A DNA stretch of 64,000 nucleotides from Octopus sinensis (GCF_006345805.1 NC_043002.1:12958001-13022000); one strand, 5' to 3'; positions 29,398 to 61,946 are shown, numbered from the stretch's first letter. Notes: generated by a model from the letters alone, not told the origin. Numbers and translations: made by a program.

Positions 29398-29606
29398 TTA
29401 ATAATTATTGTTGTTATTGTTTGGGTTATTTTGAGTGCACGCTGTGGTGCTCAAGGTTGTACAACGTTGCAGCTGCACATTGAAAATTAAGTTATCCTGG
29501 CAGGCCATAGATGGGAATGATGTGTGATTGAAACAGGGAATGAACCTTCTGCAATTTTTAGGATCCCGATTCAGGCCGAACGGATAAGAATTGCACAGGG
29601 GATCAT
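29398..29606 (-). CDS. Gene B exon: chitin-binding type-2 (CBM14) domain ending in an Asn-rich tail and stop
   Basis: Polypyrimidine tract + tttcAG at 29607-8, phase 1. Reads (N)DPLCNSYPFGLNRDPKNCRRFIPCFNHTSFPSMACQDNLIFNVQLQRCTTLSTTACTQNNPNNNNNNY*. Cys spacing is 13-5-10-12-7. Not in the ORF track. Confidence 0.85.
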
Positions 29607-29784
29607 CTGAAAGAAAAGGGAAAAGTAAAATAAAATAAAATAAAACGGAAAATAAACTTGCTCAGTGACACTATGTTGGGTGATTGCGAATCAGGAGATT
29701 TTCACAAAGACCCTAAATATTAAATTGTCCAAAAATCAGTTCTGAATATAAATATATGAAAATATATCCAGTAAGGTCTCTAGG

Positions 29785-30305
29785 CGTAGGAGTGGCTGTG
29801 TGGTAAGTAGCTTGTCCCCTCTTTGTAATGCCCTCATGGCAAATATTTATGAAATAAAGTAGCTTGCTTATGAATTACATAGTTCCAGGTTCAGTCACAC
29901 TGCGTGACACCTTGGGCTAGTGTCTTCTACCATAGCCTCAGGCCAAGCAAAGCCTTGTGAGTGGACTTGGTAGACGGAAACTGAAAGAAGCCAGTCGTAT
30001 ATATGTATATATATATATGTGTGTGTGTATGTATGTATGTATGTATGTATGTATGTATGTATGTATGTATGTATGTATGTATGTGTGTGTGTGTTTGTGT
30101 GTCTGTGTTTGTCCTCCCAACATCGCTTGACAACCGATGCTGGTATGTTTACGTCCCCGTAACCTAGCGATTCGGCAAAAGAAACCGATAGAATAATTAC
30201 TAGGCTTACAAAGAATAAGTCCCGAGTCGATTTGCTCGACTAAAGGCAGCGCTCCAGCATGGCCACAGAAAATTGACTGAAACAAGTAAAAGAGTAAAGA
30301 GAAAG
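29785..30305 (+). mobile_element. SINE family 3 with an internal microsatellite
   Basis: Same architecture as 28845. Confidence 0.8.
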
Positions 30306-31936
30306 AGTATACGAACATAGTCCGTTCCGGAACACTGTTCTTTAACCAAATTGTTCGTTACAAGAGTAGTTAACATACATATAAATAGAGGAAATCTCAT
30401 GCCCAGCCACCTCCAAACACCATATAAAGGTGTGAAATTAATTTTTCTTTGTCCTTCCATCAGTAGCAGGTATATAGATACATACATCTGTGTGTTCGCG
30501 GCCATTTGCGTGCGCCTGTTTGCCGGCGAGCTGGCAGAATCATTAGCACGTCGGGCGAAATGCTTAGTGGTATTTCGTCTGCCGTTACGTTGTGAGTTCA
30601 AATTCCGCCGAGGTCGACTTTGCCTTTCATCCTTTCGGGGTCGATAAATTAAGTACCAGTTACGCACTGGGGCCGATATAATCGACTTAATCCGTTTGTC
30701 TGTCCTTGCTTGCCCCCTCTGTGTTTAGCCCCTTGTGGGTAGTAAAGAAATAGGTATTCGGTCTGACGCTACGTTCTGAGTTCAAATTCCGCCGATATCG
30801 ACTTTGCCTTTCATCATTTCGGGGTCTATAAATTAAGTACCAGTTACGCACTGAGGTTGATATAATCGACTTAATCCATTTGTCTGTCCTTGTTTGTCCC
30901 CTCTATGTTTAGCCCCTTGAGGGCAATAAAGAAATAAGAAAATTCCTTGTAACACTAAACAGGAACTGAAGGCAACAATTATGGCAGCATTCACCAACTT
31001 AAACAAGGAGAGCATCCAGAAGTGTTGCAGGAGGTTGCGAAGTCGTCTGGACGCCGTGCTTGAAGCCAGTGAAGATTTAATTGAATAAATTTACTCTTTA
31101 GTATTTCAAGATATTTTAATGTAATTTTGGTAAACATATCTGTTAAAATGAGATGTCAGTGCTATCTTCATTCTTGCGTAATTTAGACGACAGTTTAATC
31201 ACCGCACCCTATATATATATATATATATATATATATATATATATATATATATATATATATATATATATATATATATATATATATATATATATATATATAT
31301 ATATATATATGTATGTATATATATATATATATATATATATATATATATATATAATATATATATATATATATATATATATATATATATACATATATATGCA
31401 AAATTATGGAATGTAGTAGATTAAGTCCAGGTTACATATGTTTCATAGCTAGCAGAACCTTGGAAGTAATAATTACCCAAACTAAGAATAGAGCGCAAGC
31501 TACTCTTCGAACCAAGAATTCCCTTTTCTTTACTACCCACAAGGGGCTAAACACAGAGGGGACAAACAAGGACAGACAAACGGATTAAGTCGATTACATC
31601 GACCCCAGTGCGTAACTGGTGCTTAATTTCTTTACCCCGAAAGGATGAAAGGCAAAGTCGACCTCGGTGGAACTTGAACTCAGAACGTAGCGGCAGACGA
31701 AATACGGCTACGCATTTCGCCAGCTCGCGAGCCAAGAATACCCTGGTTACATAAATAAATATATACAATTCAAACAGTTCGCACGGAAGTCATTTGGTGC
31801 CGAATCAAACTGATTAACTGATAAATTATGTAACTTCAAAGGCGACAAGCTTGCGGAATCATAAACACGCAGGAGAAAATACTCATTGGTATTTCGTCCG
31901 TCTTTAAGTTCTGAGTTCTAATGCCATCGAGGTCGA
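30105..31936 (+). repeat. Copy A of a local duplication
   Basis: Near-identical to 33488-36231, including unique sequence such as GAAATCTCATGCCCAGCCACCTCC and GAATCAAACTGATTAACTG. Confidence 0.9.
30955..31210 (+). mobile_element. Tc1-like transposon 3' end (duplicated at ~34165-34420)
   Basis: ELKATIMAAFTNLNKESIQKCCRRLRSRLDAVLEA..DLIE*, then an end CACCGCACCC+TA repeats. Confidence 0.6.
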
Positions 31937-32056
31937 TAAAATAACTACCATTTGAGTACTTAGCCACCTCATCGAAGTTGCTGATCTTGTGCAAAAATGT
32001 GAAATCAATATATGTAACTCCTACTAAATGTATAAATACATACGTTTATACAATAC

Positions 32057-32365
32057 GGAGGCGCAATGGCCCAGTGGTTAGGACAGCGGACTCGCGGTCG
32101 GAGGATCGCGGTTTCGATTCTCAGATCGGGCGTTGTGAATGTTTATTGAGCGAAAACACCTGAAGCTCCACTATGCTCTAGCAGGGGTTGGTGGCGACCC
32201 CTGTTGTACTCTTTCGTCCCCAACTTTCTCTCACACTTTCTTCCTGTTTCTTGAGTAACGCTGCGATGGACTGGTGTCCCGTCCAGCTGGGAGGAACACA
32301 TACGCCAGAGAAACCGGGAAACCGGGCCCATGAGCCTGGCTAGGCTTGAAAAGGGCGCATAAAAA
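32057..32365 (+). mobile_element. tRNA-derived SINE, family 1
   Basis: Full head to GGGCGCATAAAAA tail. Confidence 0.85.
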
Positions 32366-59457: not shown

Positions 59458-60419
59458 TACTCGTTATCTTTTATTAAACTTTTAATAATTTTGATATATA
59501 TTTAAAATAATATAAATTAATTAATTTTATGTATTGGCTTAAGTTTTTCATTGTTTGATTTGCTTAATAGTGGTTTTATCTCTAATTTAATATAATATAT
59601 ATACATATATATATAATACGCATATTTGTGTTAGGCTGTTCTGTGTACGGTGGTTGATGTTGAATTCAGAATCTTTATTCCCATCATGATAGTAAATTAT
59701 AGTGCATACATGAAGTAACAGCCCGAGGGAAAGGCACTTGAGTGTCTATTCGTGCGTCTTTGTGCAGGCGTGAATGAAAAGGAGTAGACCTGCGGTGAGG
59801 ATCAGACTAATATTCTCTCTCTCGATCACTCTTTCTGTCTCTCTCTCGCTCTCTCAGTTTTTCCGTGTTTGTACGGAGGCGCATTTAATTTGTGTGTGGG
59901 AGTAGCTGAATGGATGAGATTGTATAGAAATAATGCACCGGAAAAATATTCTAGTTGTAATGCAGTGCAATGTTGAAAATAGTCAATAAAATAAAATAAA
60001 ATAACGTCGATATGGGGGTGTGTGTGCAAATCGACGGTAAGGTAAATATTATAGAAAATACAAATTACTTAGAAAAACAATAATAACTTGTTTGTAAAAT
60101 GCAGACATGTCAAAAGGAAACAAATTGTCAATACGCCATTTTAAACTATATAATTATATCTGAACAAACCTCATAATGGAAACCGTTTAAGGATAATTAT
60201 TTTATAAAACCTGTACGAGCTGTGTGTAGGTTGGAGCTATTAATATATACACACACACACACACACATATATATATATATATACACATATGTATGCATTA
60301 GGTAGGTATGTATATGTGTATATATATATATATATATATGTGTGTGTGTGTGTGTGTGTGTGTGTGTGTGTGTGTGTGTGTGTGTGTGTGTGTGTGTGTG
60401 TGTGTGTGTGTGTGTGTGT

Positions 60420-60805
60420 GTAGGAGTGGATGTGTGGTAAGTAGCTTGCTAACGAACCACATGGTTCCGGGTTCAGTCCCACTGCGTGGCATCTTGGGCA
60501 AGTATCTTCTACTATAGCCTCGGGCCGACCAAAGCCTTGTGAGTGGATTTGACAGAAACTGACAGAAGCCCGTCGTATATATGTATATATATATGTGTGT
60601 GTGTGTGTGTGTATGCGTGTGTGTGTGTGTGTGTGTGTGCATGTTTGTGTGTCTGTGTTTGTCCCACCAGCATCGCTTGACAACCGATGCTGGTGTATTT
60701 ACGTCCCTGTAACTTAGTGGTTCGGCAAAAGAGACCGATAGAATAAGTACTAAGCTTCCAAAGAATAAGTCCTGCATGGCCACAGTCAAATGACTGAAAC
60801 AATTT
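60420..60805 (+). mobile_element. SINE family 3 with an internal microsatellite
   Basis: Same architecture as 28845. Confidence 0.85.
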
Positions 60806-61193
60806 TAATTTATGTTCGAAATCAAAGATTTTTCTGCAGTTACCTAGGCATCATTTTCCTGAACTAATGTATCTCGGATTACATTTTCGGATGTTTTATC
60901 TTTATTTACCAGCTAGTGAGGATATTTGATAGAAATATGGTTGCTACTTCTTGTATATTGAGTTCTTAACAAACAGGCATTTAAGATAGCTCGTCTGAAT
61001 AAGATATCGAACTTAAGTCTGTGTCATTGATATCATTTAATCAACTTCTCATTCTATTTAAATCTTGCCGCTTATATACATTTCTACTATTTATTTATAT
61101 TGATTTCAAATTCTGGCATGAAGCCAGCAATTTCGTGGTTGTAGGTAAGTCGATTACATCGATCCCAGTGATTAACTGGTAAATATTTTATCG

Positions 61194-61554
61194 CGTCCCC
61201 AAAGTCCATCCCCTCCTCACCGTGGTGGGGACGCTGGCAACGGGTAGTGTCAGAGCTACGCCGTCAGAAACTTCGGTTCCTGGTAGGGCCACCCAAGGTG
61301 GATTGGTCTGACACCGAGTGGTATTAGGACCACAACCCGGCAGACGGGGCTCTGGTGAAAATCCTCGGAGTGTCTGTTTCGGCAACCGGTGGCTCCTCGG
61401 TCGTTCTGCCCCTGCGTCTGCGGTCAATCTGCGGCAAACAGGATGTCTCTACATGCGGGATTGTTGAAATCCACATATTCCCACGAAACTTCTTCCATGA
61501 GTAGAAGAAGCCGACTCAACCCGCCCAGGGTGAATGTCGCCAAAAGTACAAGTA
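61194..61554. mobile_element. 361-bp GC-rich retroposon with a 15-bp target-site duplication, nested in a SINE
   Basis: GTAAATATTTTATCG at 61179-61193 and 61555-61569. The host SINE resumes on both sides. Confidence 0.75.
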
Positions 61555-61739
61555 GTAAATATTTTATCGATCTCGAAAGGACGGAGGGCAAAATTCGACC
61601 TCGGAGGAATTGAATTCAGAACGTAAACAGGGACGAAATGCAGCTAAGGATTTTACCCGGCGTGCTACCAATTCAGCTAATTCACCGCCTTCATTTATAT
61701 TTTCACTAAAAGGAGGGAAAACAAGAAAGTGAATGTTAC

Positions 61740-61946
61740 CGCTGTCTGCCATCTTGTTTGGTCGATTGGTACAATCTACTCTGGTGGGCCACATGCACAT
61801 TCGTTTCGTTGTATTGTAGAGAAGACCTTGTGGACACCATTTCACAGAAAGTGAAGTTCCTTCCCAGCATTCAACAAATCTTGCACAATCGGTAGGTTCA
61901 GGGTTACTTCCGTTCTTGTGTATACACCGGGGATCATTCTCAATAT
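61740..61946 (-). CDS. Gene A internal exon: CBM14 domain (207 nt, phase 1-1)
   Basis: ttttcAG acceptor at 61947-8 and G|GTAACA donor at 61739. Reads (D)IENDPRCIHKNGSNPEPTDCARFVECWEGTSLSVKWCPQGLLYNTTKRMCMWPTRVDCTNRPNKMADS. Cys spacing is 12-5-10-12-7. Confidence 0.9.

Follow-up and report, generated by a model that had tools for sequence, protein, structure and literature searches.

In the squid beak, the DgCBPs of Dosidicus gigas and chitin have been proposed to form a porous, hydrated scaffold that His-rich proteins enter as coacervates, to be cross-linked thereafter. For DgCBP-3 (AKI30064.1), the chitin-binding domain gamma (CBD-gamma) has been solved by nuclear magnetic resonance (NMR; 7BWE), and a Y164/N170/Q176 triple alanine mutant of this domain no longer bound chitin (bioRxiv 10.1101/2020.01.08.899344). 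The same squid beak protein structure paper already named an octopus protein, XP_029637511.1, as a close homologue (bioRxiv 10.1101/2020.01.08.899344). According to a 2025 review, beak proteins have so far been explored solely in Dosidicus. Here, we describe a locus of Octopus sinensis chromosome CM016864.1 (GCA_006345805.1, ~12,958,001-13,022,000), analysed as one stretch of 64,000 nt (the window), whose minus strand carries two genes of this kind: gene 1, which is DgCBP-2-like and lies entirely within the window, and gene 2, which codes for XP_029637511.1. In our reading, to which we assign a probability of roughly 0.78, they are two separately transcribed genes for small, secreted, disulfide-rich CBM14 proteins, the one a member of the DgCBP-2 family and the other the orthologue of DgCBP-3, with a role in the chitin scaffold.

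Exon structure of the locus

The original prediction, made from the window alone, had claimed a hidden tandem pair of chitin-binding genes composed of four minus-strand exons. All four were recovered at the predicted positions, correct to the base and with canonical GT/AG splice sites. The features of both genes are as follows.

39039..39318, minus strand: gene 1 (DgCBP-2-like) coding exon 1; ATG at 39318, predicted signal peptide and first CBM14 module, phase-1 donor A/GTAAGT
39265..39318, minus strand: predicted signal peptide of gene 1, MRILCFFVLLASLSTIFC, with likely cleavage before Gln19
29607..39038, minus strand: gene 1 intron, 9.4 kb, phase 1, GT...AG ends; holds copies of an element resembling short interspersed nuclear elements (SINE-like copies), microsatellites and local duplications
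29398..29606, minus strand: gene 1 coding exon 2; acceptor TTTCAG/AT, second CBM14 module, Asn-rich tail, stop TAA at 29400-29398
61947..64000, minus strand: last 2.05 kb of gene 2 intron 1; the whole intron measures ~9.1 kb and its remainder lies beyond the window
61740..61946, minus strand: gene 2 (DgCBP-3 orthologue, XP_029637511.1) coding exon 2; acceptor TTTTTCAG/AT, donor G/GTAACA
57886..61739, minus strand: gene 2 intron 2, 3.85 kb, phase 1; donor G/GTAACA, acceptor ATAACAG/CA
57677..57885, minus strand: gene 2 coding exon 3; acceptor ATAACAG/CA, third module, stop TGA at 57679-57677
57648..57653, minus strand: candidate polyadenylation signal AATAAA of gene 2 from a motif scan, 24 nt past the stop; more copies at +214 and +237 nt

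The exons join in frame, and both introns that lie in the window are in phase 1. The spliced translations read ...GGRY-N-DPLC in gene 1 and ...MADS-A-SLSKF in gene 2, so that the junctions predicted for 39039 to 29606 (GRY-N-DPLC) and for 61740 to 57885 (ADS-A-SLSK) were exact, and the same junction peptides are present in the homologous proteins P0003, P0004, P0006 (XP_029637511.1) and P0009 (DgCBP-3). Gene 1 consists of two exons and encodes 162 amino acids (aa) with two six-Cys CBM14 modules followed by an Asn-rich tail. A six-Cys pattern scan of the whole window in six frames returned exactly these four sites, whereas 100 first-order Markov simulations gave a mean of 0.1 and a maximum of 1 site; the four-site signal is therefore more than chance. 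When ten family proteins were compared by phmmer with every open stretch of at least 20 aa in the window, the four exons scored E <1e-40 and the runner-up E = 0.036. Neither scan revealed further family exons or decayed copies in the window.

The prediction of a pair of genes stood insofar as two distinct genes share one orientation; the upstream one, however, has three exons, the first of which lies beyond the window. The exon at 61946-61740 opens with an acceptor and the signal-peptide exon is outside the window, and hence the upstream pair of exons represents the 3' two-thirds of a three-exon gene. The overlapping sequence L005, in which positions 17332-33655 equal window positions 64000-47677 at 100% identity over 16,324 nt, contains the three coding exons of gene 2 at 10001-10271, 19386-19592 and 23447-23655, with both introns in phase 1. 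Exon 1, coding for the signal peptide and the first six-Cys module, maps to the window-equivalent position 71061-71331, ~7.1 kb past the right end. A position of this exon inside the window was ruled out, as the N-terminal 87 aa matched nothing there by tblastn.

Assignment of the two genes to beak protein families

The peritrophin-A/CBM14 identity of the exons, with one domain per exon, was borne out by Pfam CBM_14 (PF01607; gathering cut-off 22.1 bits). As single exon peptides, those of gene 1 scored 31.0 and 35.0 bits and those of gene 2 44.0 and 51.3 bits. The Cys spacings are 17-5-11-12-9 and 13-5-10-12-7 in gene 1 and 12-5-10-12-7 and 16-5-9-12-8 in exons 2 and 3 of gene 2; all four fall within the predicted spacing and fit the CBM14-type pattern C-x(11-24)-C-x5-C-x(9-14)-C-x(12-16)-C-x(6-9)-C. 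In the peritrophin-A fold, the disulfides are C1-C3, C2-C6 and C4-C5 (PMC10619976). An AlphaFold model of the O. bimaculoides orthologue of gene 1, based on a 20-sequence alignment, has a mean predicted local distance difference test (pLDDT) score of 81 with a disordered Asn-rich tail, and its fold matches were CBM14 structures only, namely, EHEP, the chitin-binding domain of CHIT1, Der p 23, tachycitin and Avr4. Judged from the model of this 93%-identical orthologue, gene 1 has a tachycitin-like fold. The same fold is assigned to gene 2 exon 3 by its similarity to 7BWE (E = 5e-33), with which it shares 51 of 62 residues (82%). Indeed, exon 3 retains the three mutated residues Y164, N170 and Q176, and also S166, D168, S179, T181, F183 and R193. 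All four modules in the window have an aromatic residue at Cys2 +3 and at Cys4 +6, the positions of Y164 and F183 of CBD-gamma. As predicted, there is no GH18 or von Willebrand factor A (VWA) partner: Pfam found CBM_14 and no other domain in the complete gene 1 and gene 2 proteins, and the ten longest non-repeat open reading frames (ORFs) of the window had mariner transposase domains only.

By every comparison that could be made at the sequence level, gene 2 is the orthologue of DgCBP-3. Residues 91-228 of XP_029637511.1 ('protein obstructor-E-like', 228 aa) are exactly what the joined exons at 61946-61740 and 57885-57677 encode, and the exon at 61946-61740 alone accounts for residues 91-159. 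XP_029637511.1 is 79% identical to DgCBP-3 over the full length (228 versus 225 aa) and, at the 90% level, clusters with the 7BWE/7BWO chain. Exon 2 is a symmetric phase 1-1 exon of 207 nt with one CBM14 module in Octopus and Argonauta alike, and intron 2 has an identical position and phase in Argonauta. Furthermore, a 985-nt transcript contig of another cephalopod (L001) is collinear with the gene 2 exons of the window: its positions 422-628 match exon 2, the break at 628/629 corresponds to 61740/57885, and its first 421 nt map ~9.6 kb upstream, to an exon on the genomic contig L004, which comes from a related species. A squid cDNA-derived protein and L001 share the exon junctions of gene 2. 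The gene is under purifying selection, with omega (the ratio of nonsynonymous to synonymous rates) at 0.14 versus O. bimaculoides and 0.06 versus Argonauta; the exon DNA differs from that of O. bimaculoides at ~22 of 411 sites, and the surrounding noncoding DNA is ~86% identical. Gene 2, a RefSeq protein already in the literature, can thus not be called hidden; only the downstream gene seems to be without an O. sinensis protein record, and for that gene O. bimaculoides and Argonauta have annotated orthologues.

The first module of gene 2 has six Cys with the spacing 13-5-10-12-11. Taken alone, it had no Pfam CBM_14 match in O. sinensis, and that of Dosidicus, at E = 0.022, stayed below threshold. 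It is nearly invariant from octopus to squid, e.g., RNCSLNHWC...GNYSGSFYCGPGYVAGGS, and the first module of the DgCBP-3 type may be a divergent subtype with a different ligand or role.

The O. bimaculoides chromosome CM046606.1 has a run of N (L002 3761-5355) where exon 1 of the DgCBP-3 orthologue is expected, with flanks collinear with O. sinensis. The O. bimaculoides protein XP_052824458.1 (147 aa) is without the signal peptide and first module and opens with an odd 9-residue exon, MDSSVTAAR; since exon 1 falls in the N run, this gene model is truncated. The contigs ctg87173l (L004) and ctg102243l (L009) of ENA entry ERZ21867824 are filed as metagenome and yet are cephalopod nuclear DNA. Among the contigs of this entry are exons 1 and 2 of DgCBP-3 (L004) and a DgCBP-2-like gene (L009). 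A frameshift near 19974 interrupts exon 2 in L004, probably through an error of the long-read assembly.

Gene 1, as far as its sequence tells, is a member of the DgCBP-2 family. Residues 3-17 have a mean Kyte-Doolittle hydropathy of 2.6, the predicted cleavage site has small or neutral residues at -3 and -1, and the Gln that follows is shared with Argonauta and DgCBP-2; the N-terminus thus resembles a signal peptide, with a probable cut before Gln19. The orthologues of gene 1 are annotated as standalone proteins of 156-162 aa and are 93% (O. bimaculoides A0A0L8H3Z7, i.e., P0003) and 72% (Argonauta hians) identical to it. Exon by exon, tblastn gave 93% with P0003 and 71% with P0004 (residues 1-95) for exon 1 and 92% and 77%, respectively, for exon 2. 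The intron of the Argonauta gene (L003 10281-11516) has the same codon position and phase. The ORF is intact, with canonical splice sites and 12 of 12 domain cysteines, and gene 1 is under purifying selection (dN, the rate of nonsynonymous change, is 0.17 versus Argonauta, with synonymous sites near saturation at a proportion of differing sites, pS, of 0.73). An exhaustive search with a profile built from the alignment of its two orthologues retrieved DgCBP-2 (AKI30063.1) at E = 4.7e-32 and octopus paralogues of like architecture, LOC106869808, LOC106869807 and O. sinensis LOC115213491. Each member of the DgCBP-2 family has two CBM_14 stretches by Pfam. The octopus paralogues of this type lie ~12.7 Mb from gene 1 on the same chromosome and have two exons and a phase-1 intron. 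Indeed, a phase-1 intron just 5' of the (N/D)DP.C motif is found in the window, in Argonauta, in the paralogues of O. sinensis and O. bimaculoides and in the cephalopod contig L009. Pairwise identity among gene 1, LOC106869808, LOC106869807 and DgCBP-2 is 33-44%, and because all family members are about equally distant from each other, DgCBP-2 is no more than a candidate for the one-to-one orthologue of gene 1.

The O. sinensis protein of gene 1 had no exact record in a collection of 15 billion sequences, and its O. bimaculoides orthologue stands alone in a 90% cluster. As the same collection includes the RefSeq proteins of gene 1's neighbour and of its paralogue, gene 1 is apparently unannotated as a protein in O. 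sinensis.

Three further observations concern gene 1 and its relatives. The intron of gene 1 contains local duplications of 98-100% identity (30226-31052 versus 33619-34261 and 31604-31903 versus 35899-36198), which could be a recent segmental duplication or an assembly artefact. In Argonauta hians (BAAFZT010000068.1, L003 5447-5623), the first 59 codons of gene 1 exon 1 recur in a partial copy of 98% identity, 4.4 kb upstream of the actual gene; here, too, partial duplication or an assembly artefact could be the cause. Another second-module exon of the DgCBP-2 type, with ~65% identity, is found on the other strand some 5 kb downstream of LOC115213491/LOC106869808 (L007 21766-21939, minus strand; L008 20876-21049, minus strand), which points to a second small DgCBP-2-type cluster at ~25.7 Mb of the same chromosome.

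A distance of 18.4 kb separates gene 1 from gene 2, which is the upstream one of the two and shares its strand. The order is the same in Argonauta, where the orthologue of gene 2 precedes that of gene 1 on one contig and one strand at a distance of 46 kb; a search for the former within 10 kb upstream of gene 1 had found it absent there. In ERZ21867824, which is decapodiform, the two genes are on separate contigs, and this assembly is thus uninformative on linkage. At the domain level, identity between the genes is at most 35%: module 2 of gene 1 is closest to module 2 of gene 2 (35% over 63 aa), module 1 of gene 1 is weakly closest to module 1 of gene 2, and both genes have a phase-1 intron immediately before the DP.C motif. 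This pattern of modules and exons fits an old duplication plus the gain or loss of one symmetric module exon. Since both subfamilies exist in Dosidicus, the duplication should be older than the octopus-squid split. What had been predicted as a divergent tandem cluster of small secreted chitin binders therefore holds in that the proteins are small and belong to squid beak chitin-binding families; by their sequences, the genes are nevertheless two old subfamilies, of the beak protein 3 and 2 types, and not recent tandem copies.

Proposed role and competing explanations

In our model, a signal peptide would route each protein to the secretory pathway, and three disulfides would lock each six-Cys module. 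The aromatic and polar face of the module (Tyr/Phe at Cys2 +3, Phe/Tyr at Cys4 +6, Asn and Gln) would bind N-acetylglucosamine chains, and, with two or three modules per chain, one protein could bridge adjacent chitin fibrils. The result would be a hydrated chitin-protein scaffold of the sort that is later filled and cross-linked by His-rich proteins in the squid beak. Both proteins are probably secreted, the gene 1 protein probably binds chitin, and the beak-forming epithelium, with the radula and other chitinous linings, is the probable site of action. In chiton radular teeth, a homologue of DgCBP-3 ranks with the top transcripts by expression, and a squid gut transcriptome study handled a 'chitin binding beak protein' as a stomach/intestine gene; the role may therefore reach other chitinous feeding and gut structures. 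A paper on the Octopus minor sucker transcriptome makes no mention of chitin, and a literature search for 'obstructor-E' and octopus found nothing.

Several observations weigh against this assignment. Tissue and function of both octopus genes are deduced from homology, and, given the squid gut study, expression need not be confined to the beak. Gene 1 is only 37-42% identical to DgCBP-2, and its absent O. sinensis record could reflect weak RNA support. A motif scan found neither AATAAA nor ATTAAA within 770 nt of the gene 1 stop (to 28627), and a strong donor-like GTAAGT lies two bases 3' of the stop (29390-29397); the 3' untranslated region (UTR) of gene 1 may contain an intron or be long. 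Finally, EHEP and Der p 23 share the CBM14 fold and yet bind no chitin (PMC10619976), and it is EHEP (8IN3/8IN6) that the model of the gene 1 orthologue matches best in fold (E = 4.6e-6, template modelling [TM] score 0.28, 22% identity).

It is imaginable, therefore, that one or both proteins, chiefly that of gene 1, bind polyphenols, catechols or other small ligands in the gut or the hardening beak, as EHEP does, and not chitin. Among solved structures, EHEP also ranks second by sequence similarity to gene 2 (E = 9e-12), and the stomach/intestine transcript would suit such a function. We nevertheless regard it as unlikely: the identity to EHEP is just 22-24%, gene 2 retains all residues shown to be necessary for chitin binding by DgCBP-3, the equivalents of Y164 and F183 are present in all four domains of the window, and octopuses, being carnivorous, have no obvious need to neutralise algal tannins. 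In a related proposal, the DgCBP-3 orthologue and the DgCBP-2-like gene would be an old, conserved two-gene 'beak scaffold' unit. Its collinear exons (signal peptide plus module, phase-1 intron, DP.C module) would fit a tandem duplication in which a symmetric phase 1-1 module exon was gained or lost, and the gene 1 protein possibly shifted from chitin to catechol or polyphenol binding, as in EHEP. Such a shift would connect the scaffold of chitin with the catechol-histidine chemistry by which the beak is cross-linked, and we keep this proposal as a speculative and rather unlikely extension. A role as immune or antimicrobial lectins that bind chitin, as tachycitin does, in place of a structural one appears very improbable. 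They are small, predicted to be secreted and cysteine-rich, and tachycitin (1DQC) was found both by sequence (E = 2e-4) and among the fold matches; this similarity, however, is at the level expected for any pair of CBM14 domains, and both proteins are by a wide margin nearest to structural proteins of the beak (gene 2 with 79% identity; gene 1 with E = 4.7e-32 to DgCBP-2).

Two further explanations concern the gene models themselves. The missing exact protein in the 15-billion-sequence collection, the single-member cluster of the orthologue and the lack of a canonical poly(A) signal close to the stop would all be consistent with gene 1 being an unexpressed or decaying copy in O. sinensis. Decay is contradicted by the selection data, i.e., the low dN versus Argonauta at nearly saturated synonymous sites and the 93% identity to O. 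bimaculoides compared to ~86% for the noncoding DNA flanking the neighbouring gene, and the ORF, splice sites and 12 cysteines are all intact, which makes this explanation quite improbable. The strand and intron phase common to all four exons would also permit one transcript for a single multidomain protein, an arrangement that would have overturned the original prediction and to which we give hardly any credence. O. bimaculoides, Argonauta, the squid cDNA-derived protein and L001 all retain the stop codon of the exon at 57885-57677; in L001, a 3' UTR comes after it. No upstream donor in this exon keeps the sixth cysteine. The exon at 39318-39039 has its own ATG and a predicted signal peptide, the orthologues of gene 1 are annotated separately, and those of the two genes in Argonauta are 46 kb apart. 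Thus, two separate genes with a function in the chitin scaffold are the reading that we carry forward.

In sum, what is new here is the apparently missing O. sinensis annotation of gene 1, the truncated O. bimaculoides model of gene 2, and the conserved linkage and exon-modular layout of the locus; otherwise, this is an ordinary pair of structural-protein genes of known type, which will not surprise specialists. A gene model is now supplied for a DgCBP-2-like gene that is seemingly missing from the O. sinensis protein set, and the 79% identity of gene 2 to its squid counterpart indicates that octopods have kept the half of the squid beak protein toolkit that binds chitin. With one module per exon, phase-1 boundaries and conserved linkage, the locus is also an example of exon-modular evolution. 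Practical value is modest; since beak proteins, according to the 2025 review, have been explored solely in Dosidicus, both genes offer candidates for proteomics of the octopus beak or radula and for biomaterials research.

Surrounding sequence and comparison with known systems

Besides the two genes, the window contains mobile and repetitive DNA. A broken mariner/Mos1-type transposon lies between the genes at 47224-48119 on the minus strand; one of its ORFs has an HTH_48 domain (E = 3.5e-14), and a separate downstream ORF has a weak DDE_3 match (E = 0.0025). Dozens of copies of the SINE-like element (~180-240 nt) occur on both strands, frequently arranged in tandem (e.g., 56374-56833, 30524-30942, 11555-12516 and 14654-15246); they are 80-90% identical to L002 15553-15793 and give rise to a recurrent pseudo-ORF, ...RNWYLIYRPRKDERQSRPRRNLNSERNGRRNTAKHFARRAN... 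Scans of the window for tRNA (ARAGORN) and Rfam families returned nothing. Tetranucleotide and dinucleotide satellites occupy more than 2 kb at 48900-51200, with strongly uneven strands (GC skew of -0.29 at 48-50 kb), and yield long artificial ORFs, e.g., a 348-aa 'SIYL' repeat.

Among the systems to which the two genes can be compared, the Pif/BMSP shell-matrix proteins and the CBM14-bearing GH18 chitinases use the same module, whereas gene 1 and gene 2 are without their VWA or GH18 domains. EHEP (25 kDa; Aplysia kurodai, 8IN3/8IN6) is, like both octopus proteins, molluscan and made of peritrophin-A modules only; it is secreted, as is predicted for them. It differs in that it binds phlorotannins and not chitin (PMC10619976) and in the arrangement of its three modules in a triangle. 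The obstructor/CPAP3 proteins of arthropods, which organise chitin, are secreted and have three peritrophin-A-type six-Cys modules in ~230 aa, an architecture that the predicted gene 2 protein resembles. In the gene 2 type, however, Pfam sees modules 2 and 3 only (two stretches each in P0006, P0008 and P0009), and gene 1 has two modules compared to their three; the RefSeq name 'obstructor-E-like' is an automatic similarity label.

The closest counterparts are the beak proteins of Dosidicus gigas. DgCBP-2 is built like gene 1, with a signal peptide and two CBM14 modules in ~155-162 aa, and the motifs VFSQ..Q.CV, DDC, NDPLC and RFIPCFNHT are common to both, whereas the overall identity is no higher than the 37-42% given above and gene 1 adds the Asn-rich tail. 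Octopuses have at least three genes of the DgCBP-2 type (gene 1, LOC106869808/LOC115213491 and LOC106869807), approximately equidistant from DgCBP-2. DgCBP-3 (A0A0G2UHG5; 7BWE, 7BWO) is a beak protein of an oegopsid squid, while gene 2 is an octopod gene known here from its sequence. Both share a signal peptide, three six-Cys modules and a length of ~225 aa, and their third modules have the same Cys spacing of 16-5-9-12-8.

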